A stretch of 64,000 bases of DNA from Neoechinorhynchus agilis (GCA_051530055.1 CM121341.1:4008784-4072783); one strand, 5' to 3'. Positions 1 to 64,000 are shown, numbered from the stretch's first letter. The notes: a model not told the origin generated them from the sequence alone. Translations and numbers: made by a program.

Positions 1-1900
1 CAACGTAAAACGTTTTTCTGCTTTATCTTTTTTGGTCGTGACGTAATCTCAACAAATGTTCCAAACTCACGTTCGTTTAGAAAGAAATCGACGAAAAAAG
101 TCGACGCGTTCTTTTTTGAAATGAATCCTGTTGACTTTTATTTAAATGCGACTTGAGCGTTGGTCGATCGAGTGACGTCAACGTAAAACGTTTTTCTGCT
201 TTATCTTTTTTGGTCGTGACGTAATCTCAACAAATGTTCCAAACTCACGTTCGTTTAGAACAAAAAACCAACGAAAAAGGTCGACGCGTTCTTTTTTGAA
301 ATGAATGCTGTTGACTTTTATTTAAATGCGACTTCAGCGTTGTTCGATCGAGTGACGTCAACGTAAAACGTTTTTCTGCTTTATCTTTTTTGGTCGTGAC
401 GTAATCTCAACAAATGTTCCAAACTCACGTTCGTTTAGAACAAAAAACCAACGAAAAAGGTCGACGCGTTCTTTTTTGAAATGAATCCTGTTGACTTTTA
501 TCTAAATGCGACTTCAGCGTTGCTCGATCGAGTGACGTCAACGTAAAACGTTTTTCTGCTTTATCTTTTTTGGTCGTGACGTAATCTCAACAAATGTTCC
601 AAACTCACGTTCGTTTAGAACAAAAAACCAACGAAAAAGGTCGACGCGTTCTTTTTTGAAATGAATCCTGTTGACTTTTATCTAAATGCGACTTCAGCGT
701 TGTTCGATCGAGTGACGTCAACGTAAAACGTTTTTCTGCTTTATCTTTTTTGGTCGTGACGTAATCTCAACAAATGTTCCAAACTCACGTTCGTTTAGAA
801 AGAAACCAACGAAAAAAGGTCGACGCGTTCTTTTTTGAAATGAATCCTGTTGACTTTTATTTAAATGCGACTTGAGCGTTGGTCGATCGAGTGACGTCAA
901 CGTAAAACGTTTTTCTGCTTTATCTTTTTTGGTCGTGACGTAATCTCAACAAATGTTCAAAACTCACGTTCGTTTAGAAAGAAATCGACGAAAAAAGGTC
1001 GACGCGTTCTTTTTTGAAATGAATCCTGTTGACTTTTATTTAAATGCGACTTCAGCGTTGGTCGATCGAGTGACGTCAACGTAAAACGTTTCTGCTTTAT
1101 CTTTTTTGGTCGTGACGTAATCTCAACAAATGTTCAAAACTCACGTTCGTTTAGCAAGAAACCAACGAAAAAGGTCGACGCGTTCTTTTTTGAAATGAAT
1201 CCTGTTGACTTTTATTTAAATGCGACTTCAGCGTTGTTCGATCGAGTGACGTCAACGTAAAACGTTTTTCTGCTTTATCTTTTTTGGTCGTGACGTAATC
1301 TCAACAAATGTTCAAAACTCACGTTCGTTTAGAAAAAAACCAACGAAAAAGGTCGACGCGTTCTTTTTTGAAATGAATCCTGTTGACTTTTATTTAAATG
1401 CGACTTCAGCGTTGTTCGATCGAGTGACGTCAACGTAAAGCGTTTTTTGCTTTATTTTTTTTGGTCGTGACGTAATCTCAACAAATGTTCCAAACTCACG
1501 TTCATTTAGAACAAAAAACCAACGAAAAAAGTTCGACGCGTTCTTTTTTGAAATGAATGCTGTTGACTTTTATTTAAATGCGACTTCAGCGTTGTTCGAT
1601 CGAGTGACGTCAACGTAAAACGTTTTTCTGCTTTATCTTTTTTGGTCGTGACGTAATCTCAACAAATGTTCAAAACTCACGTTCGTTTAGAAAGAAATCG
1701 ACGAAAAAAGGTCGACGCGTTGGTTTTTAAAAAAGAATCCTGCTGACTTTTATTTAAAAAATATCTACTTAAACGTTGGTCAATCGAGTGACATCATCGC
1801 ATAGAACGTTTCTGCCCCGTCGTTTTTGGTCGTGACGTAATCTCAACAAATGTTCAAAACTCACGTTCGTTTAGAAAAAAATCGACGAAAAAAGTCCACG
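1..1900. repeat. Tandem satellite, ~179-180 bp unit, ~10.5 copies, continues off the left edge
   Basis: CAACGTAAAACGTTTTTCTGC recurs at 1, 179, 359, 539, 719, 899 and onward. The last unit (~1700-1900) is degenerate. Confidence 0.97.
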
Positions 1901-2000
1901 TTTTCTTTTTAAATCTCACCCTGCCGTAAGTACTTACAATTTCATGACCTATCATTTCGATCATCGTAAGGTTCAATATAACCGTTTCCACTAAGAAATA

Positions 2001-3334
2001 TCACTTGTTTTTGGTTTTCTTGAAATCTTCATTGGTTCCAGTCTCGTCTGTGGCTGAATCCGGACACGAATCCTTCCCGGAGCGTTTCTTAGACCTCGCC
2101 AACGCCCGTTTGCTTCGTCTCACTTTTTGCTGTTGACGGCCGTTCTTTAACTCCTCGTCCTCATACTCCTTTTCAAGAAGCACTATCAGGTGGTTGCATC
2201 TACTTTTAAGATCCGCTGGAGTCCGTGATTTTATATACCAATCAAATCGAAATGCATCTTCATATCTGAACAATTGAAGAATGTCATCGTATACATTTTC
2301 ATTATCAAATCCCAGCCGATGGAGATGGTATATAAGAAATCGATCTTCTTGTTCCGTAAAGTTCTTTCCTTTCCCACTTCCATACTGAAATTTCAATTGT
2401 TCGAGTGGTCGCTCATATTTGGCCATCTTATGGTCCAGCATCCGTTTAATAAACTTCTTTCTTTTTATCTTATTCTCTCCTTTTTGAATCTGAAGTATAA
2501 TCTTAGTCGAATCCTGCAATTCTTCGTGCCGTTCCCAAAAAACTTGAGCATATTGTTTAACTTCGTCAGCAGTTTTCCCGTCCACTTCGTCGCAAATCTT
2601 TGTCATATTGTACCGTCCGTACTTTTCGTTGGCCTTTACGAACTGATTAAACTCCCGACGACTCCATGAACCAAACCCTTCTGTCAATAACCTTTTACGC
2701 TCTTCTTGCTCTTCCTCACTCAACGGCTGAGCCTCTTCAATCTTCTTTTGTTCGCGAGTTTGACGAGAACCGGAATTGGAATCATCTTCAATATCATCAG
2801 CACGCGTTTTTAGACCAATCGTTCGCCGATAGTAGTACATTTCTTTTTCATTTAAATCAAACAGTCGTTTTGGATAAAACTGGAAATCGTAAAGAACTGG
2901 TTGTTTAGGAGGTTTCGGTACCCGAATATTCTTGCCCTGATGAGTATAAAGTGCACCACCACCATAGGAGTATGTACCCGGTCGACGCTCACGTTTAGGA
3001 GGCATTATAAACTCAGGATTCGCTCGTTTCTCACGATAATCCTCACCTTCGAACACATAGCAACTTATGCTTTCCATTAAGTTAAAACCGTCTCCGCTGT
3101 TTGAATTGATGTCCTCGGCGGCATCAATCGTGAACTTCCTCAGCTGGTTCTCACCCAATTGCTCCAGTCTATTCTTCTGATCCAATGTACGCTTTTCACC
3201 TTCCGCCAATATCGCATCGATGTCCTGATCGGTGTACTCACCTTCCTTTGCACTAAACACGTGATTTGCCCCGTAGCGTATCATTGAAAGCATCTCTTCC
3301 TTTCCTAATTTATTCGCAGCGTCCGTTAGCCGTC
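2001..3334 (-). CDS. SMARCA5: ISWI/SNF2H chromatin remodeller, C-terminal half only (post-helicase region, HAND-SANT-SLIDE); single exon behind a splice acceptor
   Basis: Motifs KEEMLSMIRYGA, DEDID-like DQDIDAIL, PPKRER, YDFQFYP, GFGSWSRREFNQF..ANEKYGR, GKNFTEQEDRFL, FRFDWYIKSRT match ISWI. Acceptor GCTAATTTTTTTATTTTAG|GA ends at 3335. The ORF N-terminus (MFANF...) is intronic. Confidence 0.93.
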
Positions 3335-3413
3335 CTAAAATAAAAAAATTAGCAAAAACTCTCCATGACAACCATGGTAAAAAACAATTTGAAGGGGCGA
3401 AATTGGCAAACAA

Positions 3414-3807: not shown

Positions 3808-6800
3808 CAATATTCTTGGAATCAAAATTCATCAATGAAGCAACTCTGAGCAAATTACAACATCTTATAAGAAGATGCAAGACCCATTCGGTGTCAATAT
3901 ATTCTAAAGCAGCAACGAAGTTGGCGGGTATATTCAAAAAGAAACCAAAACAGGAGGATAAAAGAATGATCTATAATGTACCATGCAGACAATGTGGAAA
4001 ATATTCTTGGAATTAAAATTCATCAATGAAGCAACTCTGAACAAATTACAACATCTTTTAAGAAGATGCAAGACCCATTCGGTGTCAATATATTCTAAAG
4101 CAGCAACGAAGTTGGCGGGTATATTCAAAAAGAAACCAAAACAAGAGGATAAAAATATAATCTATAAAGTACCATGCAGACAATGTGGAAAATATTCTTG
4201 GAATCAAAATTCATCAATGAAGCAACTCTGAGCAAATTACAACATCTTATAAGAAGATGCAAGACCCATTCGGTGTCAATATATTCTAAAGCAGCAACGA
4301 AGTTGGCGGGTGTATTCAAAAAGAAACCAAAACAAGAGGATAAAAGAATGATCTATAATGTACCATGCAGACAATGTGGAAAATATTCCTGGAATTAAAA
4401 TTCATCAATGAAGCAACTCTGAACAAATTACAACATCTTATAAGAAGATGCAAGACCCATTCGGTGTCAATATATTCTAAAGCAGCAACGATGTTTTCCG
4501 GTATATTCAAAAAGGAACCAAAACAAGAGGATAAAAGTATAGTCTATAAAGTACCATGCGGACAATGTGGAAAATATTCTTGGAATCAAAAATCATCAAT
4601 GAAGCAACTCTGAGCAAATTACAGCATCGTATAAGAAGATGCAAGACCCATTCGGTGTCAATATATTCTAAAGCAGCAACGAAGTTTTCCGGTATATTCA
4701 AAAAGGAACCAAAACAAGAGGATAAAAGTATAGTCTATAAAGTACCATGCAGACAATGTGGAAAATATTCTTGGAATAAAAATTCATCAATGAAGCAACT
4801 CTGAGCAAATTACAGCATCGTATAAGAAGATGCAAGACACATTCGGTGTCAATATATTCTAAAGCAGCAACGAAGTTTTCCGGTATATTCAAAAAGGAAC
4901 CAAAACAAGAGGATAAAAGTATAGTCTATAAAGTACCATGCAGACAATGTGGAAAATATTCTTGGAATCAAAATTCATCAATGAAGCAACTCTGAGCAAA
5001 TTACAGCATCGTATAAGAAGATGCAAGATCCATTCGGTGTCAATATATTCTAAAGCAGCAACGAAGTTGGCGGGTGTATTCAAAAAGGAACCAAAACAAG
5101 AGGATAAAAGAAAGATCTATAATGTACCATGCAGACAATGTGGAAAATATTCTTGGAATTAAAATTCATCAATGAAGCAACTCTGAACAAATTACAACAT
5201 CTTTTAAGAAGATGCAAGACCCATTCGGTGTCAATATATTCTAAAGCAGCAACGAAGTTGGCGGGTATATTCAAAAAGAAACCAAAACAAGAGGATAAAA
5301 GTATAATCTATAAAGTACCATGCAGACAATGTGGAAAATATTCTTGGAATTAAAATTCATCAATGAAGCAACTCTGAACAAATTACAACATCTTATAAGA
5401 AGATGCAAGACCCATTCGGTGTCAATATATTCTAAAGCAGCAACGAAGTTTTCCGGTATATTCAAAAAGAAACCAAAACAAGAGGATAAAAGTATAATCT
5501 ATAAAGTACCATGCAGACAATGTGGAAAATATTCTTGGAATCAAAATTCATCAATGAAGCAACACTGAGCAAATTACAACATCTTATAAGAAGATGCAAG
5601 ACCCATTCGGTGTCAATATATTCTAAAGCAGCAACGAAGTTTTCCGGTATATTCAAAAAGAAACCAAAACAAGAGGATAAAAGTACAATCTATAAAGTAC
5701 CATGCAGACAATGTGGAAAATATTCTTGGAATCAAAATTCATCAATGAAGCAACTCTGAACAAATTACAACATCTTATAAGAAGATGCAAGACCCATTCG
5801 GTGTCAATATATTCTAAAGCAGCAACGAATTTGGCGGGTGTATTCAAAAAGAAACCAAAACAAGAGGATAAAAGAATTATCTATAATGTACCATGCAGAC
5901 AATGTGGAAAATATTCTTGGAATTAAAATTCATCAATGAAGCAACTCTGAACAAATTACAACATCTTATAAGAAGATGCAAGACCCATTCGGTGTCAATA
6001 TATTCTAAAGCAGCAACGAAGTTTTCTGGTATATTCAAAAAGAAACCAAAACAAGAGGATAAAAGTATAATCTATAAAGTACCATGCAGACAATGTGGAA
6101 AATATTCTTGGAATCAAAATTCATCAATGAAGCAACTCTGAACAAATTACAACATCTTATAAGAAGATGCAAGACCCATTCGGTGTCAATATATTCTAAA
6201 GCAGCAACGAAGTTGGCGGGTATATTCAAAAAGAAACCAAAACAAGAGGATAAAAGTATAATCTATAAAGTACCATGCAGACAATGTGGAAAATATTCTT
6301 GGAATTAAAATTCATCAATGAAGCAACTCTGAACAAATTACAGCATTGTATAAGAAGATGCAAGACCCATTCGGTGTCAATATATTCTAAAGCAGCAACG
6401 AAGTTTTCCGGTATATTCAAAAAGGAACCAAAACAAGAGGATAAAAGTATAGTCTATAAAGTACCATGCAGACAATGTGGAAAATATTCTTGGAATAAAA
6501 ATTCATCAATGAAGCAACTCCGAGCAAATTACAGCATCGTATAAGAAGATGCAAGACCCATTCGGTGTCAATATATTCTAAAGCAGCAACGAAGTTTTCC
6601 GGTATATTCAAAAAGGAACCAAAACAAGAGGATAAAAGTATAGTCTATAAAGTACCATGCAGACAATGTGGAAAATATTCTTGGAATCAAAATTTATCAA
6701 TGAAGCAACTCTGAGCAAATTACAGCATCGTATAAGAAGATGCAAGACCCATTCGGTGTCAATATATTCTAAAGCAGCAACGAAGTTGGCGGGTGTATTC

Positions 6801-8392
6801 AAAAAGGAACCAAAACAAGAGGATAAAAGTATAATCTATAAAGCACCATGCAGACAATGTGGAAAATATTCTTGGAATCAAAATTCATCAATGAAGCAAC
6901 TCTGAGCAAATTACAGCATCGTATAAGAAGATGCAAGACCCATTCGGTGTCAATATATTCTAAAGCAGCAACGAAGTTGGCGGGTGTATTCAAAAAGAAA
7001 CCAAAACAAGAGGATAAAAGAATGATCTATAATGTACCATGCAGACAATGTGGAAAGTATTCTTGGAATCAAAATTCATCAATGAAGCAACTCTGAACAA
7101 ATTACAACATCTTATAAGAAGATGCAAGACCCATTCGGTGTCAATATATTCTAAAGCAGCAACGAAGTTGGCGGGTGTATTCAAAAAGAAACCAAAACAA
7201 GAGGATAAAAGTATAATCTATAAAGTACCATGCAGACAATGTGGAAAATATTCTTGGAATCAAAATTCATCAATGAAGCAGCTCTGAACAAATTACAACA
7301 TCTTATAAGAAGATGCAAGACCCATTCGGTGTCAATATATTCTAAAGCAGCAACGAAGTTTTCCGGTATATTCAAAAAGGAACCAAAACAAGAGGATAAA
7401 AGAATGATCTATAATGTACCATGCAGACAATGTGGAAAATATTCTTGGAATCAAAATTCATCAATGAAGCAACTCTGAGCAAATTACAACATCTTATAAG
7501 AAGATGCAAGACCCATTCGGTGTCAATATATTCTAAAGCAGCAACGAAGTTTTCCGGTATATTCAAAAAGAAACCAAAACAAGAGGATAAAAGTATAATC
7601 TATAAAGTACCATGCAGACAATGTGGAAAATATTCTTGGAATCAAAATTCATCAATGAAGCAACTCTGAACAAATTACAACATCTTTTAAGAAGATGCAA
7701 GACCCATTCGGTGTCAATATATTCTAAAGCAGCAACGAAGTTGGCGGGTGTATTCAAAAAGAAACCAAAACAAGAGGATAAAAGAATGATCTATAATGTA
7801 CCATGCAGACAATGTGGAAAATATTCTTGGAATCAAAATTCATCAATGAAGCAACTCTGAACTAATTACAACATCTTATAAGAAGATGCAAGACCCATTC
7901 GGTGTCAATATATTCTAAAGCAGCAACGAAGTTTTCCGGTATATTCAAAAAGGAACCAAAACAAGAGGATAAAAGAATGATCTATAATGTACCATGCAGA
8001 CAATGTGGAAAATATTCTTGGAATCAAAATTCATCAATGAAGCAACTCTGAACAAATTACGACATCTTATAAGAAGATGCAAGACCCATTCGGTGTCAAT
8101 ATATTCTAAAGCAGCAACGAAGTTTTCCGGTATATTCAAAAAGGAACCAAAACAAGAGGATAAAAGAATGATCTATAATGTACCATGCAGACAATGTGGA
8201 AAATATTCTTGGAATCAAAATTCATCAATGAAGCAACTCTGAACAAATTACAACATCTTATAAGAAGATGCAAGACCCATTCGGTGTCAATATATTCTAA
8301 AGCAGCAACGAAGTTTTCCGGTATATTCAAAAAGAAACCAAAACAAGAGGATAAAAGTATAATTGAAGTACCATGCAGACAATGCGGAAAAT
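3808..8392 (+). repeat. 191-bp tandem array (~24 copies) derived from a Penelope-like element linker/GIY-YIG start
   Basis: ORF track repeats every 191 bp (3983, 4174, 4365...8185). The unit encodes KFINEATLSKLQHLIRRCKTHSVSIYSKAATKLAGIFKKKPKQEDKSIIYKVPCRQCGKY and the last unit runs into an intact GIY-YIG motif. Confidence 0.95.
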
Positions 8393-8810
8393 ATTATGTT
8401 CGACAAACAAGTCAAGGACTAAAAAAGCGTATTGACCAACATAAATATTGTGTGCGCAGAGCAGATACGTCGTCCGCCATCAGTAATCATGTTGTAAAAA
8501 CGAATCATGAGATCGGATTTTAGGATGCTCATCAGATCATGATCGAGAGTGACTGGAAAAGGAGGGTAATCAAAGAGGCGGTAATGATAAACAACAACTG
8601 TATGGATGGGAATACCTCTAGCTGGAAGCTGAAGATTCCATATAAACTGAGACCTGCTGTATGGATGGGAATACCTCTAGCTGGAAGCTGAAGATTCCAT
8701 ATAAACTGAGACCTGCTCAGGGGGCACCCGAGTTCTGCCCATGCTACACTCACCATGAACTATTCTGGATACCTGAAGAGGTCTGCATGCAGACGAAAAT
8801 TCGTACAAAT
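8340..8810 (+). mobile_element. Penelope-like retroelement 3' remnant: GIY-YIG endonuclease, 59-bp tandem duplication, pLTR with hammerhead
   Basis: VPCRQCGKYYVRQTSQGLKKRIDQH...SAISNHVVKTNHEIGF*...ESDWKRRVIKEAVMI follows the PLE pattern VYKIPCxxC-YIGQT-R..EH-SA..H-H-R...EA. One in-frame stop. Duplication at 8599-8657/8658-8716. Confidence 0.88.
8770..8805 (+). ncRNA. Minimal type I hammerhead ribozyme (PLE type)
   Basis: TAC-CTGAAGA-G-GTCTGCATGCAGAC-GAA-AATT-C-GTA. Core CUGAAGA 8773-8779, palindromic stem II, GAAA 8795-8798, AAUU stem III, cleavage after C8802, 3-bp stem I. Confidence 0.75.
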
Positions 8811-9112
8811 AAATCAGTCACCGGTGAGGTTAATAAGGTTGCAACTATCAATAAATTGGAATCCCCCCCGATTGAAATCAAAGACACAATAATATTTTAC
8901 CTAAACAACCAATACGAAATTCATAATTACCTCACAAAAGGTTAAAATCGACCTTTTTGAACTCATTTATTCCTAGCTATTGTTCAAATTAATGCAATTT
9001 TACAAGCAAACTGCATTTCCACATTAATGGATTAGTTTTTGCTCGCTGATTGTCGAAATTTTGACATATGAAGAAAAAGGTCATATTAGTGAGAAGCACT
9101 TCCTCCCGCTCT

Positions 9113-9240
9113 TCGGATTCCCGAAAACCCAATGAGATATATTTAGTTTTTTTTAAATCTAGACGTCAGATACTAAAGTTCTTATTATGCAAGAGGTGGA
9201 AGTTGTTTAGAAAAGCAAAATTAGTCTCCAGAGAATACCA
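9113..9240 (+). repeat. Dispersed ~130-bp repeat; inverted copies at 39893-40030 and 40245-40379
   Basis: TTCGGATTCCCGAAAACCC...TTTAAATCTAGACGTCAGATA is the reverse complement of TATCTGACGTCTAGATTTAAA...GGTTTTCGGGAATCCGAA. Confidence 0.85.
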
Positions 9241-10171
9241 TAATTTTAGTTTTATTGTTGAAAATAATCACTTTTTTAACTTTGTACCCCATTGTACACT
9301 TTCGTTTTTGTTTCCGACTTTAATTGCCGGAAATTGTTGAATTTCCAATGTTATAAACCTATGCTGGAGACATTTCACATTCTCCTTTCTGAAGACGATT
9401 TAATATTTCAAGTTTTGTTCCGCGTTTCCTGTTCGAATTTAAAGCCATTACAGTTCACAGACAATAAACTGATCGAATATTCCATTATCGAATCAAGGAT
9501 TTTCTTTTACTAGGGAGAGTATCGCATTTTTGACTTCAAGCGAAACAACCTTTGAGCATTTTGCGGCTAGAAAACGCACTTTTAAATAAAGTTCATGTAA
9601 TTAACAAAAAATATACCTGGATAATCGGCGTTCCATTGTAATTTGTAGCTTGAAATTCCTAGTTCCAGCTTAACAAACGATGTGATATTAGGAACCTTTG
9701 AAACTCAAGCGGGTGAAATTCAACATAGAAAAGCATACGAATGATAGCGGAAAAGAAAGTTGAGTAAATAAAATCAAAAATAAAGAAGCAAATTAAAAGT
9801 TTCGCAAACAAGTGAAAATTATAGCATGCGAAGCGCGAGAGCTGAGTGTTATTGAACAAGAAAAAATGACAGAAATGCATAAAATGGCAAGGCAATAACG
9901 GTTCCGGTTTAATAAAAAAGTTCTGAGAAGGTACGACTTAGACAGTTGCAAAGAAGTTGCTCACGGATACATTTTGCTTGGTGATTGAGAAAATAGAAAT
10001 TAATTTATTAACCCCTTTCCCAATTTCCTGAAGAAGTCGGACGAAACGGACGAAATATTTTGAATTAATAAAATTAATCTCTATTTTCTCAATCATCAAA
10101 CAAAATATACGTTAGACAGTATAGGATGGCTTCTTATAAAGGGATAATAAGAACACGTTTTATTTGTTGCT

Positions 10172-10998: not shown

Positions 10999-11589
10999 TA
11001 AGAAAAAAAAAATTAACAGGATAAAAATATGGATTTCGCCAAACAGCAAGATTAGTGTCGAGCAACAGCATAGATTTATTCGTTCATCGTAGTTAGCATA
11101 GAGTTATATAATCTTTTATTTGTTGACAAGGGGTTAAAGGTAAATTATTGATAGAGTTCATTTAGGCAAAATGTTAAGAATATAAAAAATCACACATTTT
11201 GGCCCAAATTAACCGTAGTCGGCACCGATATTTCTACTATTTTTTGTTTGTTTTCTCATTGGCCTCTAAGTCAGTGAGGTAAACAGAGGAAGGAGCTGTC
11301 GCCTTGGATTTCCAGCGTCATTGACTTGTTGTACCTATCGAGATCAAAGCACGAATAACTTTGATGAATTTGTGTTTAAAAAATTGGACCCATGCACCTT
11401 TGGGTCCTCATAAGCACACAGATATTTTGTTTTTTGTATTTACGTTCGAATGGAAATGTCCGGTCGGGGATGTCCGTTCGAGTGGGAATTTCCGGTCGGG
11501 TGGGAATATCAGGTTTAGTTATGTCGATATGTAAGGTACCGGGGAATGGGATGTCCATTCTCGTGGGAATTGGCGGATATTGTTTGCAG

Positions 11590-12815
11590 AAGCGCTTTCA
11601 AGGTTGGTCTTTCCTCGTATTCATTTCAAGTTATGATATCCGAGAGAAGATTGGGCAGCATGGAAAAAGGAGCGTAAATATACGAGGATGAAATTAATTA
11701 GGATTACGAGTGTTGTGCTCGTGTGAAAAGGGAAGAAATTGTTCAGCTGGGGTTGAGAGGCGTTTTGTTTGTTTTATGAAAATAGCATCAAGGCATTCGG
11801 CGAGAAGGAGAAAGTCAGTTGCGTGAATTTTATATGCTTTTTTATGAAACATTTCAAGACGGCCGATTTGAGATTTCGATAGGTTGCAAAATACGGGATA
11901 ACCGCAGGCGAGGGAAGGTAAAATAAAAATGAAGTAAAATTTGGAGAGATCGGGTGAATGGATTCCTAAATGTCGGAGGCGTTTGAGGAGATAAATATTA
12001 AAGGTGTTGTGCTTGAGGGAAGGTGTGATGTGCGAGTGCCATTTCAAGTTTGATTGAAATTGGAGACCCAGAATTCTGAGTGGGTGGTTACTCGTAGGAT
12101 GTTATTTAGAAGCTCAGAGATGATGTGGAGTTGCAGGAGAATTAGGAGATCATTTCGATGCATTTAAAGAAATTCAGGTGGAGTTTGTGATTGGTGCCGA
12201 AATCTTTTATATGTGTGATTTCTTTAGAGGTTAAAGAAAGGGCGAGGTGGGATGGTGAATGGGCGATGAGGGTAATATCGTCGGCGTATAAGAAGAGTTT
12301 AGAGTGAGAGGAGAGAGGTTTGAGGTTGTTGAGGAAAATGTTAAAGAGAAGTGGTGACAACAGACCACCTTGGTGTACGCCTTTGGTGAGAGATATTCTG
12401 ATAGAGGAGGTAGAACGGCAGTGAATGTATTGTTTGCGATTGTGAAGATAAGATTCGAGCCAGCGGATCTGCCACAAGTTGAGACCCGGGGTCGAATGCT
12501 TTCGATAAATCAAGTTGAATGAGATGGGTGACGCGAGAGGGATTATTGTCGAGATTTCTTAGGAGTGTGTAATAAATGCAAAGTAAGACATCGGTTGCAG
12601 AAAATTTGGGCCGGAAGCCGAATTGCAGGGGCGATAACTTTTCGTTGAGAAGTGAAAGAAGGCGAGATTTAAAACATTTTTCGATGGTTTTTGAAAGAAC
12701 GGCAGGTAGAATGGAAATTGGACGGAATGATTCGGCCGAAATGGGATGCCCTTTTTTTGAACAAGGATAACTTTAGCAGTTTTAAGGCATGAGGGGTAGA
12801 AGGATAACACATTAA
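11590..12815 (-). mobile_element. Defective L2/CR1-group non-LTR retrotransposon (RT and C-terminal region), 5'-truncated
   Basis: KTAKVILVQKKG, QFGFR-equivalent, DLSKAFD, WLESYLHNRKQY, GVHQGGLLSPLLFNIF, LYADDITL, KWHSHI...LKRLRHLG are spread across frames. Confidence 0.9.
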
Positions 12816-14851: not shown

Positions 14852-14988
14852 GAACTACGAAACACTCTTTTTTCCCTTTGGGTCCGACTTAAAGACGGAA
14901 ATAAAACATTGGTGAATTTAAGAAGTGAAAAGTGAAGGGGTTTAGAAAAACCCAAATAACAAATCGCACCACTCAACAATTTACTCCT

Positions 14989-51260: not shown

Positions 51261-51522
51261 CCTTTAGAAAGGTTTTATTCGACAAACAAAGCAGTCGTTA
51301 TGTGTGAATAACTAATTTTTTATATACAATGGTACACGGCGCCATTATCGATTTTCGTTACAATAGACCACACCGGGAACAATTCTTCCGTATTTAAGAA
51401 AGTATTGTCTCGTTTCTTCCGTTTTTGCGTCATAGAGCACAACGTCCAGTCTCGTTTCTTCCGTTACGAGGCCAAATGTTTTTCTAGTTTGTGCGCATTA
51501 ACTTTTAAAATTTTGATTTAAG

Positions 51523-51990
51523 ATGACGAACACTAAAGGATGCAGACGTGGAACGAGGTACATGTTCGCCCGGGATTTCCGGAAACATGGTACGATTCCA
51601 CTTTCGACTTACATGAAAGTGTACCGTCGAGGTGATTATGTGGACATTAAGGTAAACGGTGCCGTTCAAAAGGGAATGGCTCACAAATACTACCATGGAC
51701 GAACTGGACGAGTGTTCAATGTGTCTAGACACGCCGTCGGTGTGGTCGTCAATAAACGAGTTCGTAGTCGTCTTATTCCAAAACGGATTTTCGTCCGTGT
51801 TGAACACGTAAAACCAAGCAGGTGCCAAGAGGAGTTCAAAAAGAGACAAAAGGAAACTGAAAAAGCGAAAAAAGAAGGAAAGGAGATTAAAAAAAGAATG
51901 CCCGCACAACCCAGACCTGGAATGTTGGTTAGAACATTTGGAAGAAAGCCACAGTTACTCAGGCAATTACCTTATGAACTAGTTGTTTAA
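51523..51990 (+). CDS. RPL21: 60S ribosomal protein L21 (eL21)
   Basis: [23 protein letters not shown]...[31 protein letters not shown]...[10 protein letters not shown]. Confidence 0.97.
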
Positions 51991-52420
51991 GTCCTCTTTC
52001 TAAACCAACAACATATCTTTTTTTGCGTTTGAAGATTGAACGATTTTTTTGATGTTTTTTTATCGAAATGGCGGAAATAATTATAGTGGAATTTTGGTTT
52101 AATCCGATTGGGTTTCGGCTATGCACAATCTCGTCTTTATCAAGGTTGTTGGCCTTTTGTTTAAGCCATAAACAAACAATATATCTTTTTTTGCGTTTGA
52201 AGATTGAACGATTTTTTTGATGTTTTTTTATCGATGTGGCGGAAATAATTATAGTGGAATTTTGGTTTAATCCGATTGGGTTTCGGCTATGCACAATCTC
52301 GTCTTTATCAAGGTTGTTGGCCTTTTGTTTAAGCCATAAACAAACAATATATCTTTTTTTTGCGTTTGAAGATTGAACGATTTTTTTATCGAAATGGCGG
52401 AAATAATTATAGTGGAATTT
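51983..52420 (+). repeat. ~168-bp tandem duplication (2.5 copies) of the RPL21 3' UTR
   Basis: ATATCTTTTTTTGCGTTTGAAGATTGAACG occurs three times. Junction shares TTGTTTAAG with the stop-codon region. Confidence 0.9.
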
Positions 52421-52789
52421 TAGGAATTTCTATGCGCAAAATTTGTCGACTAATTCATCTCCAATTAAAGATTTTGCGTTTCTAGACGTGCGTTGTCGAC
52501 TACTTTAGAGCTGAAACAATTCAAAAAACGTAGTAAAATTTAGTTCGGTTTAAATTGCGCATTGAAATGTTTCTAAAACAAAAAGGATCAAACTCTAATT
52601 TCGTAACGCGGTCCTGACCATCATCATTGGAAAAAGTAAAAAACTGAGACTCCTTCAAGACCAAAAAAGCTCGTTCTAAATAACATTTCCAAAATTCGTT
52701 AGGGTGACAATTCAACATGGTGGCGGACTGTCAAGGACTCTTTTGGTATACACCACCCAGATCCCTTCCATAATTTGACTTCCACATAA

Positions 52790-54095
52790 TTAAAACAGGT
52801 TCTAGATTCCATTAAATTATTTTTTCACAATGATCTACGTCAGACATCACCTGAAACTTTTGTCAAATCGCCGATGCTCCCCTTAGGTTCATCATATGAA
52901 GTACTAAAGTACCTCATGAAATTACCTAAAAAGTCGTATTCTCAAGCCGAAATCCCAAACTGGGCTCTTCGCTACATCATCCCCGAACTTATCGACCTTC
53001 TTACCCACATTATGAACCTCAGCTTTTTGTATGGCATCTACCTCTTGCCTGAAAACTGCCAAAGTTATTCTTGTTCCAAAAAAGGCATCCTATTTCGGCC
53101 GAATCATTCCGTCCAATTTCCATTCTACCTGCCGTTCTTTCAAAAACCATCGAAAAATGTTTTAAATCTCGCCTTCTTTCACTTCTCAACGAAAAGTTAT
53201 CGCCCCTAAAATTCGGCTTCCGGCCCAAATTTTCTGCAACCGATGTCCTACTTTGCATTTATTACATACTCCTAAGAAATCTCGACAATAATCCCTCTCG
53301 CGTCACCCATCTCATTCAACTTGATTTATCGAAAGCATTCGACCCCGGGTCTCAACTTGTGGCCGATCCGCTAACTCGAATCTTATCTTCACAATCGCAA
53401 ACAATACATTCACTGCCGTTCAACCTCCTCTATCAGAATATCCCTCACCAAAGGCGTACCTCAAGGTGCTGTGCTGTCACCACTAAAGATTTCTGCAACA
53501 ATCACAAACTCCACCCGAATTTCTCTAAATGCTTCGAAATGATTCCTTCATTCTCTCGCAGCGATCGGGATGAATGTTTTGCGAATCTACACTTTACTGG
53601 TAGAGCTCCCAAAAAGGGGCATCCTATTTCGGCCGAATCATTCCGTCCAATTTCCATACCTTTAATATTTATCTCCTCAAACGCCTCCGACATTTAGGAA
53701 TCCATTCACCCGATCTCTCCAAATTTTACTTCATTTTTATTTTACCTTCCCTCGCCTGCGGTTATCCCGTATTTTGCAACCTATCGAAATCTCAAATCGG
53801 CCGTCTTGAAATGTTTCATAAAAGAGCATATAAAATTCACGCAACTGACTTTCTCCTTCTCGCCGAATGCCTTGATGCTATTTTCATAAAACAAACAAAA
53901 CGCCTCTCAACCCCAGCTGAACAATTTCTTCCCTTTTCACACGAGCACAACACTCGTAATCCTAATTAGTTTCATCCTCGTATATCTACGCTCCTTTTTC
54001 CATGCTGCCCAATCTTCTCTCGGATATCATAACTTGAAATGAATACGAGGAAAGACCAACCTTGAAAGCGCTTCTGCAAACAATATCCGCCAATT
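52790..54095 (+). mobile_element. Second defective L2/CR1-group copy, inverted relative to 11590-12815; YADD region deleted
   Basis: SFRPISILPAVLSKTIEK, FGFRPKFSATD, DLSKAFD. 53680-54117 is nearly the reverse complement of 11570-12000. Confidence 0.9.
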
Positions 54096-54415
54096 CCCAC
54101 GAGAATGGACATCCCAACCCGACCGGATACTCCAAAATTAATAGCCAGTTTCGTTTTTCAATCCGAACTCGAGTGTTTATGAGAGGACCAAAATGTGCAT
54201 GGGTCTTCTTCTACTTTGGGCATTAACAAACGTGTTATTATTAAAACGTGTTATTATAACAAGAGATTTAAATGTTGATTCTCGTGGAAGCGAACAAATT
54301 TTGCACCCGATAAAACTTAAGAAACTCAAGTTTCGAGGATAACCTTTTTATTATATTTTTTTGGGGGGTTGGGATTGTTATCCTCTTCGGTAGGTACAGA
54401 CATCTTCTGGAGCGT

Positions 54416-55135
54416 TCATCTGTGACCTTGTTCGTTATCGCACCCAGCGGCGGCGAACTTTTTCCTGATTTCATTGAATTGCGCTCGACGTTGTCCTCTA
54501 TGGCCGTCAATCATCTTCAAATTCGAATCAATATCTTCATCTCCAGAAACCCCAGTCATGAAGGCAACCTAAATATTTATAAAGTGAAAAGCCGAATCTG
54601 CCTTTAAAAGAGAGAGAACCTTTTTATCAAAGAAATCGGCAGCAGCCTTTACTCCATGTTGGCTGACATCGATCTCATGTATCTGCTCATAGAGGACACG
54701 AAGAGCACACAAAGTGTCGCCTTTATCAGCGTTCGTCGTCTTCTGCTCAGCGTACTCCGCTCGCACTTTTCGAAAAATGAGAAGAAATTCCCTAAAAGAC
54801 ACTTTTCCATCCTTATCCTCATCGACCTGACGAATCATTTCCTTGAGAGCCAAATGCGTTTGTGCCGCTCCCAGTTTTTCCATCATTATTCGCAACTCAT
54901 TGACATCCAAAACGTTGTCGTGATTGAGGTCGTACTCTCTAAACACTGCCAAATATTTCTTAATTGCTTGAGTTGTGAAATCACGAAACTCGGAGTAGAG
55001 ATGGTAAATCGAAAATGCACGACGCTTTTTCAATTGATCTTGGTCGTCGCATTGGTCCGAACATAATGAAGCTGGAATCTGTTCACCGCATATTTCCAAG
55101 CGGCGGTTCAATTTTGCAGCCAGCTCAGAATCCAT
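54416..55135 (-). CDS. EFHD2: Swiprosin-1/EFHD EF-hand protein, two exons (55135-54620, 54568-54416)
   Basis: ELAAKLNRRL, YSEFRDFT, ELRIMMEKLGAAQTHLALKEMIRQVDEDKDGKVSFREFLLIFRK, EIDVSQHGVKAAADFFDKK|V. GT-AG intron of 51 nt. Confidence 0.92.
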
Positions 55136-55401
55136 ATCACGGAACAAGGTTTTCTATGTCTCCTAAATGTAGAAATCTACAAAAAGATGCCTTGATGTGG
55201 TGAATGTTGAGAAGAAAAACGAAATTAACAGATCGTGTCTTTTAAGGACACGTTGCTTAAAAAAGCAAGTCCTAAAAATGATCTACGTGAAATTAGAAGA
55301 AGAAAAACGCTTGTTTAAAAACAACAAAAATGATCATTTATGACAAAAAAAGAGATAGAGAATAAACCTGTCTACTGAAATACCCATGTTTGCATGTATC
55401 T

Positions 55402-55811
55402 AAAATCGAACGGGAAAAAATTAAGCGACTAAAGGAAATTAAAGGGATTAAACAAAAAAAGAATCCTCAAAACGAAAGTGAAGAGGATTCAATGAGCCTG
55501 AAAAGAGAATGAGGCATAAAGATCGGGGATTGGAAAAGAGCGAGAACTATAAAATGAGGGGAAATCGAACGGGAAAAGATTAAGCGACTCTAGGAAATTA
55601 AAGGGATTAAACAAAAAAAGAATGCTCAAATCGAAAGTGAAGAGGATTCAATGAGCCTGAAAGGAGAATAAGGCATAAAGATCGGGGATTGGAAGAGCGA
55701 TAACTATAAAATGAGGGGAAATCGAACGGGAAAAGATTAAGCGATTCTAGGAAATTAAAGGGATTAAACAAAAAAAGAATCCTCAAATCGAAAGTGAAGA
55801 GGATTCAATGA
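55402..55811. repeat. ~158-bp tandem repeat, ~2.6 copies
   Basis: AAATCGAACGGGAAAA near 55402, 55562, 55719. Confidence 0.9.
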
Positions 55812-56572
55812 ACAATTGGAGTGATTGAGTGGAAATGTTCAAAGATTTCATCATTATTATCCAAGGACCTACGCTATAGTCTTCAGACGAATAATGTGGC
55901 ACAGATCGGATAGTCAACGGTAAAATCTGACTGGTCTTTGTGTTTAGATGAAAGATGATAAACAATTCGTGTGTAACAAATAATGAGAAATTGGGTCGTC
56001 CTGCACGAATTGCGGCATTCCCTACATAAAGCAACCGTCGTTTCCATTACGTTTTATCAGCAGTACCAAAGGAATTCCCGGCGTGGAATCTGATAACTTA
56101 AGAGAAGTTGGCCTTTAGCGACATTGCTCTGTGAAAGATCAGATTGATTGGCATGATTAAAACCTTAATGTGAGCGGTGGGATAAATCGTTTCGTAGAAG
56201 TTGTCGACGTATCGATTGGTCAACAAATGGAATCAATCAAAACGGAAGAAGGAACGCTACGACGCATTGATTATTGGTCGCAATGTTCCTTCAGTTTAAG
56301 ATTTTGGTCAACGGACAATGGTCAAGAAGCCATTGGGCTCGGACGAAGCAAATCACAATCAATTTATTACATTCATCAATCAGATATTTTTCCATACCAA
56401 CCCGCGTATGAGATGTTTGCGTTTGTTGCGTATTTAACGAGAAAACTAAAAGAATGTTCTCTATTCAATGCTCCGAGGAACACTTCATTTATAACAATGG
56501 GCCATCTCGAATCTCTTTGGCGTTTCTCCATGGCCAAAATCAAAAGGCTGACGTTAAATAGCAATTTCTTTT

Positions 56573-57430
56573 GAGATCTCGTCCATATCAAATCCGTGTG
56601 AATGGATCATCTTTTTTAGTTTTTAGCCGAGAAAATCTCAATTATCTTTCAAGATCTCGTCCGATTTTTTATTTATCGTATTCAATTTTTACCGATAAAA
56701 TTTTCGGTCTCACAAAATCCATTATATTTAAATCTGTTTTAGTGGATTTTTTTAGTTTTAATCAAAAAAAATCTCAATTATCTTTCGAGATCTCGTCCGA
56801 TTTTTTATTTATCGTATTCAATTTTTACCGATAAAATTTTCGGTCTCACAAAATCCATTATATTTAAATCTGTTTTAGTGGATTATTTTTTTAGTTTTAA
56901 CCGAGAAAATCTCAATTGGCTTTCGAGATCTCGTCCGATTTTTTATTTATCGTATTCAATTTTTACCGATAAAATTTTCGGTCTCACAAAATCCATTATA
57001 TTTAAATCTGTTTTAGTGGATTTTTTTTAGTTTTAATCGAGAAAATCTCAATTTGCTTTCGAGATCTCGTCCGATTTTTTATTTATCGTATTCAATTTTT
57101 ACCGATAAAATTTTCGGTCTCACAAAATCCATTATATTTAAATCTGTTTTAGTGGATTTTTTTAGTTTTAATCAAAAAAATCTCAATTGGCTTTCGAGAT
57201 CTCGTCCGATTTTTTATTTATCGTATTCAATTTTTACCGATAAAATTTTCGGTCTCACAAAATCCATTATATTTAAATCTGTTTTAGTGTATTATTTTTT
57301 TTGTTTTAATCGAGAAAATCTCAATTGGCTTTTGGGATCTCGTCCGATTTTTTATTTATCGTATTCAATTTTTACCGATAAAATTTTCGGTCTCACAAAA
57401 TCCATTATATTTAAATCTGTTTGAGTGGAT
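56573..57430. repeat. ~136-bp tandem array, ~6 copies
   Basis: AGATCTCGTCCGATTTTT about every 135-138 bp from 56652. Confidence 0.93.
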
Positions 57431-57679
57431 TATTTTTTTCAATCGAAAAAATTCGTCCGATTTGAGTTATTTTACAAAAATAGTGTGAGATGTGGACCGA
57501 TTTCTTTGCAGGATACCACGGGAATCTTTTGATTGATACGTTTCCCGCCATCGCCTTCCGCTCACACAATCTACGAATAATAAGATTGCAAAATTAGAGA
57601 AGATTGATCTCATCAATTCACGCCCACGCACGCTCTCAATACACACACATTCGTTCGTTGTAGTTGTTTCTCGAAAAAA

Positions 57680-59747: not shown

Positions 59748-61792
59748 AATAAAGAAGATTTCTGCGGTTTTGGTCGAAAGATCAACAGTAGAAAACAAAA
59801 GGAAATCAATAGATTATTTAAAAAAAAGGCGATCATTAGATAAAAAATTAGAATGGAAAATAAAGAAGATTTCTGCGGTTTTGGTCGAAAGATCAACAGT
59901 AGAAAACAAAAGGAAATCAATAGATTATTTAAAAAAAAGGCGATCATTAGATAAAAAATTAGAATGGGAAATAAAGAAGATTTCTGGGGTTTTGGTCGAA
60001 AGATCAACAGTAGAAAACAAAAGGAAATCAATAGATTATTTAAAAAAAAGGCGATCATTAGATAAAAAATTAGAATGGAAAATAAAGAAGATTTCTGGGG
60101 TCGAAATCAACAGTAGAAAAAAAAGGAAATCAATGATTATTTAAAAAAGGCGATCATTAGATAAAAAATTAGAATGGAAATAAAGATTTCTGGGGGTCGA
60201 AAGATCAACAGTAGAAAACAAAGGAAATCAATAGATTATTTAAAAAAAGGCGATCATTAGATAAAAAATTAGAATGGAAAATAAAGAAGATTTCTGGGGG
60301 TCGAAAGATCAACAGTAGAAAACAAAAGGAAATCAATAGATTATTTAAAAAAAGGCGATCATTAGATAAAAAATTAGAATGGGAAATAAAGAAGATTTCT
60401 GGGGGTCGAAAGATCAACAGTAGAAAACAAGGAAATCAATAGATTATTTAAAAAAAGGCGATCATTAGATAAAAAATTAGAATGGAAATAAAGAAGATTT
60501 CTGGGGTCGAAATCAACAGTAGTCATTAGATAAAAAATTAGAATGGGAAATAAAGAAGATTTCTGGGGGTCGAAAAATCAACAGTAGAAAACAAAAGGAA
60601 ATCAATAGATTATTTAAAAAAAGGCGATCATTAGATAAAAAATTAGAATGGAAAATAAAGAAGATTTCTGGGGGTCGAAGAATCAACAGTAGAAAACAAA
60701 AGGAAATCAATAGATTATTTAAAAAAAAGGCGATCATTAGATAAAAAATTAGAATGGGAAATAAAGAAGATTTCTGGGGTTTTGGTCGAAAGATCAACAG
60801 TAGAAAACAAAAGGAAATCAATAGATTATTAAAAAAAAGGCGATCATTAGATAAAAAATTAGAATGGGAAATAAAGAAGATTTCTGGGGGTCGAAGAATC
60901 AACAGTAGAAAACAAAAGGAAATCAATAGATTATTTAAAAAAGGCGATCATTAGATAAAAAATTAGAATGGGAAATAAAGATTTCTGCGGTTTTGGTCGA
61001 AAGATCAACAGTAGAAAACAAAAGGAAATCAATAGATTATTTAAAAAAAGGCGATCATTAGATAAAAAATTAGAATGGGAAATAAAGAAGATTTCTGGGG
61101 GTCGAAGAATCAACAGTAGAAAACAAAGGAAATCAATGATTATTTAAAAAAAGGCGATCATTAGATAAAAAATTAGAATGGAAATAAAGATTTCGGTTTT
61201 GGTCGAAAGATCAACAGTAGAAAACAAAAGGAAATCAATAGATTATTTAAAAAAAAGGCGATCATTAGATAAAAAATTAGAATGGGAAATAAAGAAGATT
61301 TCTGGGGGTCGAAGAATCAACAGTAGAAAACAAAAGGAAATCAATAGATTATTTAAAAAAAGGCGATCATTAGATAAAAAATTAGAATGGGAAATAAAGA
61401 AGATTTCTGGGGTCGAAAAATCAACAGTAGAAAACAAAAGGAAATCAATAGATTATTTAAAAAGGCGATCATTAGATAAAAAATTAGAATGGGAAATAAA
61501 GATTTCTGCGGTTTTGGTCGAAAGATCAACAGTAGAAAACAAAAGGAAATCAATAGATTTAAAAAAAGGCGATCATTAATAAAAAATTAGAATGGGAAAT
61601 AAAGAAGATTTCTGGGGGTCGAAGAATCAACAGTAGAAAACAAAAGGAAATCAATAGATTATTTAAAAAAAAGGCGATCATTAGATAAAAAAATTAGAAT
61701 GGAAAATAAAGAAGATTTCTGGGGTTTTGGTCGAAAGATCAACAGTAGAAAACAAAAGGAAATCAATGGATTATTTAAAAAAAAGGCGATCA
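59748..61792. repeat. ~105-112-bp tandem array, ~19 copies, immediately upstream of striatin
   Basis: GGCGATCATTAGATAAAAAATTAGAATGG repeats, with two unit variants (with or without TTTT before GGTCGAA). Confidence 0.95.
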
Positions 61793-62369
61793 GAGGCTAA
61801 AATTCGATTCGAAGAGAAAACTTTTTAAAAATACGATCACTTTAAAAACGATTTAACGAGTTGATGCAGAAAACTGAAGATTAGCATAATAAGTTTTTTT
61901 GATCACTTTACACAACCTTTAAAAAGTTGAACTGGCAAACAAAATCATCAGAGCGTTATTTCGCGCTATTAGAAAAGATGGGAATTGTTTACGTTCATAA
62001 GCGACAAAGTAATTTGTTTTGACAAAACGGTAGGAAAGCACCGCTTATGAATATAAATGAGCATTCAGTTCTCCCACCGACAAAAAACGCCTAAAATGTG
62101 GAACAAACATGCAAATTAAGGGATAGAAATAAAAAAATTGAGAAAACGAATTAAAATAAACGAAAACCAACATTAAAAAACTATCTCTTACGATGCAAAA
62201 TTGGAGTCCTTTAATGCAATGGCGGCACAGAAGCGAAAGAAGAATCACTAAAGAAGGTTTGGTTCCATTGATCATCAGGATCAAGAAAAGTCTTAAAGAT
62301 TCTTCCATAGCCGAGAAACGTCATCACTTCTGAACAATTTCGGATCTCAGCAACAAATCGGCGACAGTT

Positions 62370-63251
62370 ATGGATGTTGAGTTTCAAGCAGTCGTTTCCG
62401 AGGTACGAAGCCATCTATCGCGATATTCCGGCCTTTTAGGCGAATTGGAAATTAGTGATAATCCGGATTTCGACTCTTTTTGGAAATCAATCACTTTTTT
62501 GTATAGCGAGAAGCATCCCTTCCGTTTCGTGATGAAATCGGTAAACGTTAGACAATTTTGTAATTGGATAGTTTTAATTGACCAAAATATTTGCTGGATT
62601 TTAAAGTCGGAAAAACATAAGAAATTCTCTAGTCGATCTTTAACGGAATAGTCCCTTTCAGTTTGAAAAAGTGATCACATTTCAATACTAGAAGCTGAAC
62701 AGTTCATTGACAACGAAATTAAACAGCTCGAATTATTTTTAAGTTCTCAGCAACGCCGAATAATTCAATTAGAAAACGAAATTAAATCGCTTCGCTCGGC
62801 ATTCGTACGGTTACAAGCGACGAAAATGCGCTTAATGGCATACCACGAGAACCGGAAAAAGCTTTTATTGACCGATTTGGACTGTGGAACTGATGTAACT
62901 CGGATCAATATGTTTTCAACTGAGCAATCATTGGAGAAGAAATGGCAATTTTCGAGTGCGTTGGACAATTTGATTGACCAAGGCACTGAGATAGTCCGAA
63001 ATTTAAAACCAACTTAACGTGTCTTTTACAAGGGAAAAGATCGAAGACTCGTTAAATTTGGATTACAACAGCAACGATTCGGGATTAGTCGTTCAATATC
63101 CCGTCTTTCGCTCTCTGAATGGACACTAACACGTTCAAAAGATTTAATAGAAGAGATCGGACACCGTGCTCGCTCTGACTGGATTATTCTGTTTATTGGA
63201 TCTGCTTTAATCATCCTTCTTATTGTGATGATCTATCGATTCCTTCTCTAA
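62370..63251 (+). CDS. GOSR2: Golgi Qb-SNARE membrin/Bos1-like, multi-exon
   Basis: LDNLIDQGTEI, GLQQQR...LTRS..LIEEIGHRARSDWIILFIG plus a C-terminal TM. QR-to-RA spacing (29 aa) equals that of human GOSR2 as recalled. Proposed 39-nt GT-AG intron at 62994-63032. Confidence 0.72.
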
Positions 63252-63559
63252 TTGATTAAATTCACTTTTCTTACTTCCACACGGAGTAATAATGCATATG
63301 AACACAAAGATCAATTGAACTACGAATCGGTACTGCATGAAGAAGCTATAACCTCGGTGGAAATCAAGGAGGGAAAATGGTATCAAGCAGTAATTGGCCG
63401 CTGTGATCGCAGAAAACCACGTCAAAACGTCGTAAAATCTCTTGCGTGATGGTGATTTCAAAAACAATGGACGGAACGATCGTCTATCAAACACAATCCG
63501 TCTTATATCTTCAGAGTAAGAAAAGTTAACTAGTTTTTTAAAATATTACATCTTATGAG

Positions 63560-64000
63560 GTAAAATTTCTTCAAAAAGGGCCTAGAAGCCTCCTTCGTCT
63601 AAAAAAGATGAAAGGATCTTTTATACGGACATTAATAAGACAATCTCTAAATTTTAGCGTTATCTTTAGATCTCTATACCTTTTTGAACTTTTAAGAATA
63701 GAGATTAAAAATCCTAGGTGAAATTTCTTCAAAAAAGCCCTAGAAGCCTTCTTTGTTTAAAAAAGTTGAAAAGACAATCTCTAAATTTTAGCGTTATCCT
63801 TAGATCTCTATACTTATTTGAACTTTTAAGAATAGAGATCAAAAATCCTAGGTGAAATTTCTTCAAAAAAGCCCTAGAAGCCTTCTTTGTTTAAAAAAGT
63901 TGAAAAGGCAATCTCTAAATTTTAGCGTTATCTTTAGATCTCTATACTTTTTTGAACTTTTAAGAATAGAGATCAAAAATCCTAGGTGAAATTTCTTCAA
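63560..64000. repeat. 134-bp tandem array, continues off the right edge
   Basis: CTAGGTGAAATTTCTTCAA at 63714, 63848, 63982. Confidence 0.92.

Follow-up and report, generated by a model that had tools for sequence, protein, structure and literature searches.

We analysed a 64-kb stretch of the Neoechinorhynchus agilis genome, namely positions 4,008,784–4,072,783 of CM121341.1 (19.4 Mb) in assembly GCA_051530055.1, hereafter called the window, and found it to be crowded with tandem arrays of mutually unrelated units. These arrays are real, confined to single loci within the window, and born where they are now found. It is fairly probable that they arose in place through seed duplications mediated by microhomology, followed by unequal exchange, and this at exceptional density. 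The published assembly has a size of 46.2 Mb in three large scaffolds and is a Nanopore/HiFi/Illumina hybrid build with Hi-C; tandem repeats are not discussed in the genome paper (PMC12690905).

Arrays were called by Tandem Repeats Finder (TRF), and their registers and decayed edge copies were checked by a gapped search with each consensus, which upheld the registers. TRF revealed 14 array loci with units of 105–320 bp and 2–24 copies (scores 693–8173, matches 92–100%), adding up to 18.0 kb or 28% of the window, and to 19.4 kb (30%) when decayed edge copies from the gapped search were included. The original prediction for this DNA, about 14 unrelated arrays covering some 19–20 kb (~30%), was thereby borne out, and the unit sizes agreed as well. 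Comparison via blastn and tblastx resulted in no similarity between array families, with the sole exception of the two blocks of a 194-bp family, and in no extra copies of array units elsewhere in the 64-kb window. Mean identity within arrays was lowest in the 320-bp array (83%) and highest in the 215-bp duplication (100%), and array births were therefore spread over time. Based on public-record gene calls and Pfam scans, the arrays fill most intergenic spacers, lying 0–230 bp from coding ends, and two are intronic, one in a Sec6 gene and one in a WD40-like gene. Apart from progenitor copies, the coding exons of the gene calls are not interrupted, as had been claimed before. With a longest array of 4.6 kb, and all arrays located between or inside genes, they are not classical satellites of tens of kilobases in gene-poor heterochromatin. 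They are satellite-like in that units of some 100 bp and above are repeated head to tail several times, to a degree that far exceeds chance, and a homogenised core, diverged edges, and higher-order repeats mark concerted evolution.

Amplification in place is supported by at least three arrays in which the flanks continue from the units. The first lies at the RPL21 gene (listed at 51523–51990), whose open reading frame (ORF; 51517–51987) was identified as ribosomal protein L21e (E = 1.5e-45). Here, the periodicity of a 168-bp array (51983–52421, plus strand) begins at TTGTTTAAG (51983), comprising the last RPL21 codons and the TAA stop, and RNA contigs stop at 52023–52027, within the first unit, with no RNA from later copies. 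Therefore, the 168-bp unit consists of the gene end, 3′ untranslated region (UTR), cleavage region, and downstream DNA. In the second case, a 191-bp array in the intron of the WD40-like gene (42512–45012, minus strand), the unit contains the last ~108 bp of an exon (...IHDIEIK), the GTAGTT donor, and ~90 nt of intron, and its progenitor is the exon copy at 44812–45012. The third is a different 191-bp array of 24 copies (3809–8395, plus strand), whose unit is a piece of an ORF ending in ...VPCRQCGKY and whose last copy reads on through ...YYVRQTSQGLKKRIDQHKY...SNHVVKTNHEIGF into a GIY-YIG-type endonuclease ORF (8179–8520). Pfam was blank for this ORF, and the ESM Atlas grouped it among GIY-YIG clusters at a score of 0.96 and with 194 features in common; derivation of the array from a putative Penelope-type GIY-YIG endonuclease ORF is supported.

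Two further arrays had been assigned a local template. One is a compound array with periods of 215 and 375 bp inside a gene whose called 810-aa product matches Pfam Sec6; its location in Sec6 was thus confirmed, but an origin from a Sec6 mini-exon could not be verified, the 215-bp unit having no coding signal on the strand of the gene. The other is a 182-bp array (48525–49483), the unit of which encodes, on the minus strand, 57 aa with 39% identity (E = 6e-10) to an ORF at 34013–34399 and is therefore derived from a dispersed coding family. The proposed identity of this family as a CRE endonuclease was not verified, since Pfam, a PDB sequence search, and the ESM Atlas were all blank for both the unit ORF and its paralogue; the 39% match and a motif of the kind present in restriction-like endonucleases serve as a lead only. 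The name CDT2, given before to the WD40-like gene, was likewise not verified, as only a weak WD40 match was obtained. Altogether, three of the five proposed templates (RPL21 stop and 3′ end, exon end with 5′ splice site, Penelope-type ORF) stood, and as all three run on from their arrays, so did local seeding. That the process does not depend on sequence, as previously stated, is supported too: the 14 unrelated units go back to the 3′ end of a gene, to the boundary of an exon with its intron, to ORFs of dead transposons, to intronic DNA, and to spacers.

Contigs from one short-read DNA run and three RNA runs were compared with positions 51400–57399, where single-copy DNA word depth was about 126–132. 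As the DNA run may share a project with the assembly, it rules out long-read concatemers but does not represent an independent individual. Five array/flank or unit/unit junctions were bridged by DNA contigs, which pass from RPL21 into the 168-bp array, cross a unit–unit junction of this array, exit it into unique flank, enter a 159-bp array (55403–55811) from its left flank, and run from the end of the latter through the spacer to the start of a 136-bp array (56590–57452). At the 168-bp unit–unit junction, the depth was 258 versus ~130 for single copy, as expected because this junction is present twice in the assembly. Of the three arrays tested for summed depth, two (168 bp and 136 bp) agreed with the number of copies assembled, and the 159-bp array showed an excess. 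That the arrays are artefacts of assembly or of long-read concatemers is extremely improbable, even if the hybrid assembly is Nanopore-heavy (PMC12690905) and two duplications are 100% identical. Besides the short-read junctions and a depth that scales with copy number, the copies bear structured, shared substitutions and indels, and concatemers would not give decayed edge copies.

For comparison, the DNA word depth of non-LTR (long terminal repeat) retrotransposon fragments was 5,000–41,000 versus ~130, indicating a high-copy family; repeats that are really dispersed therefore stand out clearly from the arrays. Two such fragments with RVT_1 matches are located at 11547–12794 (minus) and 53041–54116 (plus) and are 95–99% alike. 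When other assemblies or individuals were sought for a comparison of copy number, the RPL21 gene was found in the source record alone.

The copies inside the arrays revealed a layered history of growth. In the intronic array, the exon copy shares 95.1% identity with the copy next to it, the latter is 93.4% alike to the remaining eleven copies and differs from them by four deletions of 6, 6, 6, and 8 bp, and these eleven derived copies (42512–44594) are 99.4–100% alike. The 8-bp deletion common to the eleven removes the duplicated GTAGTT donor, which the one older copy within 44595–45012 retains; either decoy donors were selected against, or a donor-less variant was expanded by chance. Of the variable columns in the 24-copy 191-bp array, 36 are singletons, and 17 are shared between copies and arranged in mosaic blocks, e.g., two linked changes common to copies 5–7 and 14–17. 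Higher-order periods were detected by TRF in five arrays (370, 380, 359, 274/409, and 312 bp), decayed edge copies were found in at least five arrays by gapped search, and in the Sec6 compound array a brand-new 215-bp duplication is nested in an old ~375-bp repeat. A single burst would leave copies equally related and without layering, while 17 shared mosaic columns and three age layers were observed. Thus, age layers, mosaic variants, higher-order periods, and edge decay point to many successive in-register exchanges, not to one burst.

These features also do not support a single circularise-and-roll event, which the original prediction had offered as one mechanism and which may still account for individual bursts; template switching, its other option, is reasonable for the seed. 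In the circle model, fragments of about nucleosome size would be excised, circularised by microhomology, copied by rolling circle, and re-inserted as a concatemer at or near the source. Such a course would fit the 6-bp microhomology at two unit–unit junctions, the clustering of unit sizes at 159–194 bp, the intronic burst of eleven copies with 99.4–100% identity, and the satellite-bearing extrachromosomal circles documented in Tribolium (PMC11610590). We nevertheless regard it as unlikely, because the layered and mosaic structure reflects many events, the arrays lie exactly on and in register with their progenitors so that homologous exchange suffices without circles, and template switching predicts microhomology equally.

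In regard to the junctions, the 24-copy array consists of 24 copies plus AATATT and the 182-bp array of five copies plus CTTGGG, both true junction microhomologies of 6 bp. Random breakpoint pairs in the non-array part of the window show microhomology of at least 6 bp with P = 0.003, and its occurrence in two of the four to six junctions that can be read far exceeds chance expectation. An integral copy number together with microhomology was seen in these two arrays and in a 59-bp duplication (2 bp), while the 215-bp duplication showed 0 bp. The 124-bp and 136-bp arrays end in partial copies of 17–22 bp, which could be short homologies or simply partial units. In the remaining arrays, copy numbers are fractional (2.6, 5.7), and the original junctions are therefore unreadable. 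Of the three junction microhomologies claimed earlier, AATATT and CTTGGG (P = 0.003 each) are real, but TTGTTTAAG had to be rejected, as these are the 9 bp with which the repeated unit opens; an indel and a further stretch of homology come after them.

Only about six hairpin-type inverted repeats were found in the window. One of them (14691–14854; dG −31.9 kcal/mol, z −5.2) caps the right end of a 169-bp array and another one (49304–49483; dG −68.4, z −13.7) that of the 182-bp array, each with one arm in the last unit, and the right breakpoint of the 215-bp duplication is located within a hairpin as well (dG −25.1, z −7.5). Hairpin ends belong to a minority of arrays and do not form a rule.

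The units have a median length of 174.5 bp, and eight of the 14 measure 159–194 bp. The clustering of 8/14 units at 155–200 bp yielded p = 3e-6 against a log-uniform distribution of 20–500 bp (broad nulls gave p = 3e-6 or 1e-5) and p = 0.002 against a uniform distribution of 100–330 bp, with the bin picked after the data had been seen. Among the 14 units, there was no mode at ~340–380 bp, and the other six measure 105–136, 215, or 320 bp. WW periodicity was weak, with z = 1.7–2.4 at 10–10.5 and z = 3.4 at 11.5, as judged by simple shuffles with many periods tried. Unit lengths near 159–194 bp are common to many satellites. The unit sizes form a single broad mode, with no second mode at double size and only a weak 10-bp WW periodicity; in this window, the link to nucleosomes is a coincidence of length only. 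Larger-period duplications of low copy number exist too (351 bp and 2.99 kb), so that unit size may be filtered while arrays expand and not when they are born, a proposal already made for Tribolium (PMC4675708). The ~2.99-kb tandem duplication (29682–30144/32666–33136 and 30611–30740/33210–33339) contains a small membrane-protein-like gene, and its identity is 76% over the ORF and 95% in one 130-bp block.

The fairly probable course named at the outset, seed duplication followed by unequal exchange, would comprise two steps. First, a segment of ~100–350 bp would be duplicated head to tail by an error of replication or repair for which homology is hardly required, if at all (as in tandem duplication mediated by microhomology or in template switching), sometimes at a hairpin. 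Second, as the internal structure of the arrays shows, out-of-register homologous exchange, possible from two copies onwards, adds, removes, and homogenises units over a long time, with unequal sister-chromatid exchange, replication slippage, and gene conversion as candidates and with higher-order repeats, near-identical central copies, and decayed edge copies as products. As the seed step would be sequence-blind, the units would be whatever local DNA was available, such as the stop codon of a gene together with its 3′ end, the final part of an exon plus donor, or ORFs of dead transposons. Coding sequence disrupted by an array is not seen, presumably as a result of selection against such arrays. 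The seed stage is visible in two fresh duplications (59 and 215 bp) with 100% identity, and an array density of ~30% in gene-dense DNA implies either a high rate of birth or expansion or weak removal in a small genome.

Several observations weigh against this two-step course. The number of clean junctions is only four to six, and as one of them has 0 bp and one 2 bp of microhomology, the latter is not universal. Most arrays are non-integral (e.g., 2.6 or 5.7 copies), for which a duplicate-then-exchange scheme has to invoke later deletions. The recent burst of 11 near-identical intronic copies could equally be a rolling-circle product. Hairpins, considered as a general rule at array ends, were rejected because 3/31 ends fell in the lowest ~5% versus 1.7 expected, i.e., without enrichment. 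Confinement to a single locus was judged from the 64-kb window and from the depth of three arrays, and one of these, the 159-bp array, exceeds the depth of its 2.6 assembled copies, with one contig at 593 versus ~130; this array may be longer in the pooled worms or copied elsewhere. Finally, the high array density itself is not accounted for by the model.

The excess depth of the 159-bp array, together with the two units derived from transposon ORFs, would also suit arrays that were inserted rather than born here, either as cargo of mobile elements or as dispersed satellite families (miniature inverted-repeat transposable element/Helitron-type or Tribolium Cast-like). This is very unlikely: 11 of 12 arrays tested have no flanking inverted or direct terminal repeats, units continue into unique host sequence (RPL21, exon), no family resembles another one or any further part of the window, and the depth of the 168-bp and 136-bp arrays corresponds to the local copies only. 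Significant inverted repeats between array flanks were absent from all 12 arrays tested, a 320-bp array alone having 59-bp direct repeats on both sides, and the 64-kb window contained no dispersed copies of an array plus its flank. A search of the whole window against Rfam at gathering thresholds resulted in tRNA-Arg only, with no known RNA family in any array, and a permissive Rfam scan of 8300–9400 gave nothing credible. With neither terminal inverted repeats nor an RNA family, the readings as mobile cargo or as RNA-gene arrays are therefore unsupported here.

Transcription was detected for the 159-bp array, which is covered by RNA contigs at depths like those of the mRNA of the neighbouring AIF1-like gene, with one contig running from the mRNA into the array. 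This array may represent an outron, a 5′ UTR, or a duplicated promoter region. Its transcription, the filling of most intergenic spacers within 0–230 bp of coding sequence, and unit sizes near one nucleosome repeat would be in line with arrays retained for use, be it as phased-nucleosome spacers or insulators, as promoter multipliers, or as dispersed centromere-like sites as proposed for holocentric nematodes. We consider such a use distinctly unlikely, as unrelated, mostly young sequences with decaying edges indicate turnover and not conservation, two of three arrays tested are without RNA, the 10-bp WW periodicity is weak, and units made from dead transposon ORFs or a decoy exon end suggest an origin by chance. 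In addition, RNA contigs carry non-genomic 5′ tags ending in ...ACTTGCAAACA, joined at the start of RPL21 (51523, plus) and at the AIF1-like gene (55176, minus). The upstream part of the tag occurs in two variants, the tag is not contained in the window, and the arrangement looks like spliced-leader trans-splicing.

Among known systems, a similar picture is offered by holocentric nematodes, where many unrelated, poorly conserved arrays are scattered on gene-bearing arms with no single heterochromatic block (PMC3634726). Nematode satellites number 7–47 per Mb, with units of up to 200 bases and at least 10 copies (Subirana and Messeguer 2013, PMC3634726). By these nematode criteria, the window has four arrays in 64 kb (~60 per Mb), and 14 of any copy number with ~30% coverage; its units measure 105–320 bp, and several can be traced to a local gene or transposon. 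The Cast families of Tribolium castaneum are multi-locus, have spread between chromosomes in bursts, and make up ~4% of the genome (Pavlek 2015, PMC4675708; Volaric 2024, PMC11610590), while the families of the window are single-locus within it, templated on the spot, and reach ~30% coverage. Both share euchromatic satellite-like arrays with more variable edge monomers, and a role of microhomology and circles has been discussed for Tribolium. There, ~170-bp monomers come to predominate as copy number rises (PMC4675708, PMC11610590), and extrachromosomal circles have been detected (PMC11610590).

In fission yeast, sequence-independent head-to-tail duplications arise between short pairs of microhomology (Dan et al. 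2021, PMC8639346), which offers a good model of the seed step in view of the 6-bp, 6-bp, and 2-bp junctions in the window. The yeast events are subclonal and quickly revert to wild type, whereas the arrays of the window have grown up to 24 copies in one assembly. Reportedly, the microDNAs of Shibata et al. (work of 2012) are extrachromosomal circles of 200–400 bp with microhomology at their ends. Size range and microhomology resemble the arrays, which show multi-step growth; the resemblance may serve as a lead only. Satellites from transposable-element fragments have been reviewed (PMC9659126), and Helentron-carried arrays are described in oyster (PMC7492417). Two arrays of the window are similarly derived from fragments of transposon ORFs (the Penelope-type endonuclease region and the dispersed ORF family), but no carrier-element ends flank the arrays, and others stem from host-gene DNA. 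Transposons are thus one substrate among several and not the vehicle. In other acanthocephalans, read clustering has revealed many species-specific satellites (PMC11758010). Overall, the kind of event is already known; its scale in N. agilis is notable and absent from the genome paper, and what sets it apart is that arrays take up ~30% of gene-dense DNA, that each family apparently keeps to one locus, and that progenitors are visible.

Satellite birth is usually inferred long afterwards, while here the progenitors still stand beside their arrays (RPL21 stop and 3′ end, exon end with donor, transposon endonuclease ORF), and one 64-kb stretch displays all stages, with a duplication of two copies at 100% identity as one extreme and a decayed array of 83% identity as the other. 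Should the density prove to be as high across the genome, direct measurements of birth rate, junction rules, and selection on unit size would be feasible in these 46 Mb. Tentatively, this lineage may possess an unusually active, sequence-blind amplification, by which any segment of 100–350 bp may become a single-site array. If so, the cause could lie in a lost repair or anti-recombination function, in a genome for which many core-gene losses are already on record, and a quarter to a third of the 46-Mb genome would consist of constantly renewed single-locus satellites, the densest such case known and a natural setting in which to follow how genes give birth to satellites. For annotation, the arrays are a hazard: they multiply decoy splice donors and poly(A) regions beside real genes and mislead gene callers. 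One public-record gene model (42826–46182, minus) spans the intronic 191-bp array and ends inside it, splitting an apparently single WD40-like gene (exons 44847–45440 and 41680–42423) into two calls.

Starting from the left end of the window, a 180-bp array called by TRF and gapped search (1–1910) comprises at least 10.7 copies and is cut by the window start. Its copies are 95–99% alike apart from the last two (1611–1910), which have decayed to 88%, and 90 bp separate its end from the stop of an ISWI C-terminal ORF (2001–3413, minus), downstream of which it lies. This ISWI-type ORF is one long ORF holding the C-terminal HAND-SANT-SLIDE half only; ATPase exons were not evident nearby in the window. 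The 24-copy Penelope-type array, likewise supported by TRF and gapped search, is followed by the 59-bp tandem duplication (8598–8717), which is fresh, 100% identical with 2-bp microhomology, and possibly a seed-stage event. An LSM gene is accompanied by two intergenic arrays. The 169-bp array (13798–14854; TRF 13798–14737 with 5.6 copies, 5.7 copies to 14749) lies downstream of it and terminates on the right in a 40-nt loop and an inverted partial unit (14789–14854), forming the hairpin mentioned above, while the 124-bp array (15583–16591) lies upstream, with 8.2 copies by TRF or eight copies plus a partial copy of 17–19 bp and a higher-order period of 370 bp.

In the Sec6 gene (20219–25876, plus), the compound array spans 23765–24825 with a ~375-bp period in 2.2 copies and includes the 215-bp duplication (23772–24201; 2.0 copies, 100% identical, 0-bp microhomology). 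The 194-bp family (36893–38131; TRF 36899–37567 and 37694–38131) forms blocks of 3.5 and 2.3 copies with identities of 90–93%, separated by an unrelated 123-bp spacer (37571–37693), with 110 bp between the end of the family and the downstream ATG of a WD40 gene. For the intronic 191-bp array, TRF reported 42512–44891 with 12.4 copies, and 13 copies were counted in total. In the 182-bp array, the five copies plus CTTGGG reach 49435, and an inverted partial unit of 56 nt (49428–49483) acts as a cap. The 320-bp array (50082–51247; TRF 50557–51247 with 2.2 copies) comprises ~4.5 copies, the left ones older (76–86%) and the right ones younger (96–97%). The 59-bp direct repeats around it (49926–49984 and 51367–51425, 98%) enclose the array plus ~250 bp of unique DNA and could stem from an old duplication of larger extent or mark the ends of an element.

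Further to the right, the 168-bp array at the RPL21 end has 2.6 copies (TRF 52001–52387 with 2.3). The 159-bp array, also of 2.6 copies, is located 227 bp upstream of the trans-splice acceptor of the AIF1-like gene (minus). The 136-bp array (TRF 56612–57452 with 6.2 copies; 6.3 copies in all) has higher-order periods of 274 and 409 bp and is intergenic, 228 bp downstream of the striatin stop, with no RNA coverage. A purine-skewed array of 105–111-bp units (59748–61792) with ~19 copies and a higher-order period of 312 bp begins 72 bp from the striatin ATG (59676, minus), on its upstream side; it is strongly purine-rich on the plus strand, with a GC skew of 0.40 and an AT skew of 0.37 in the 60–62 kb bin. 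The last array, with a 134-bp unit (63558–64000; TRF 63637–64000), is cut by the window end and preceded by a decayed partial copy (63558–63612).

Apart from the arrays, the window contains two long palindromes (17504–17721 and 41081–41528), whose arms are 90% and 96% complementary, respectively. A dispersed element of ~165 bp was found at 31736–31900 and 41154–41318, the two copies being 99.4% identical and 9 kb apart, with weaker relatives at 39892–40055, 40243–40406, and 9110–9236.

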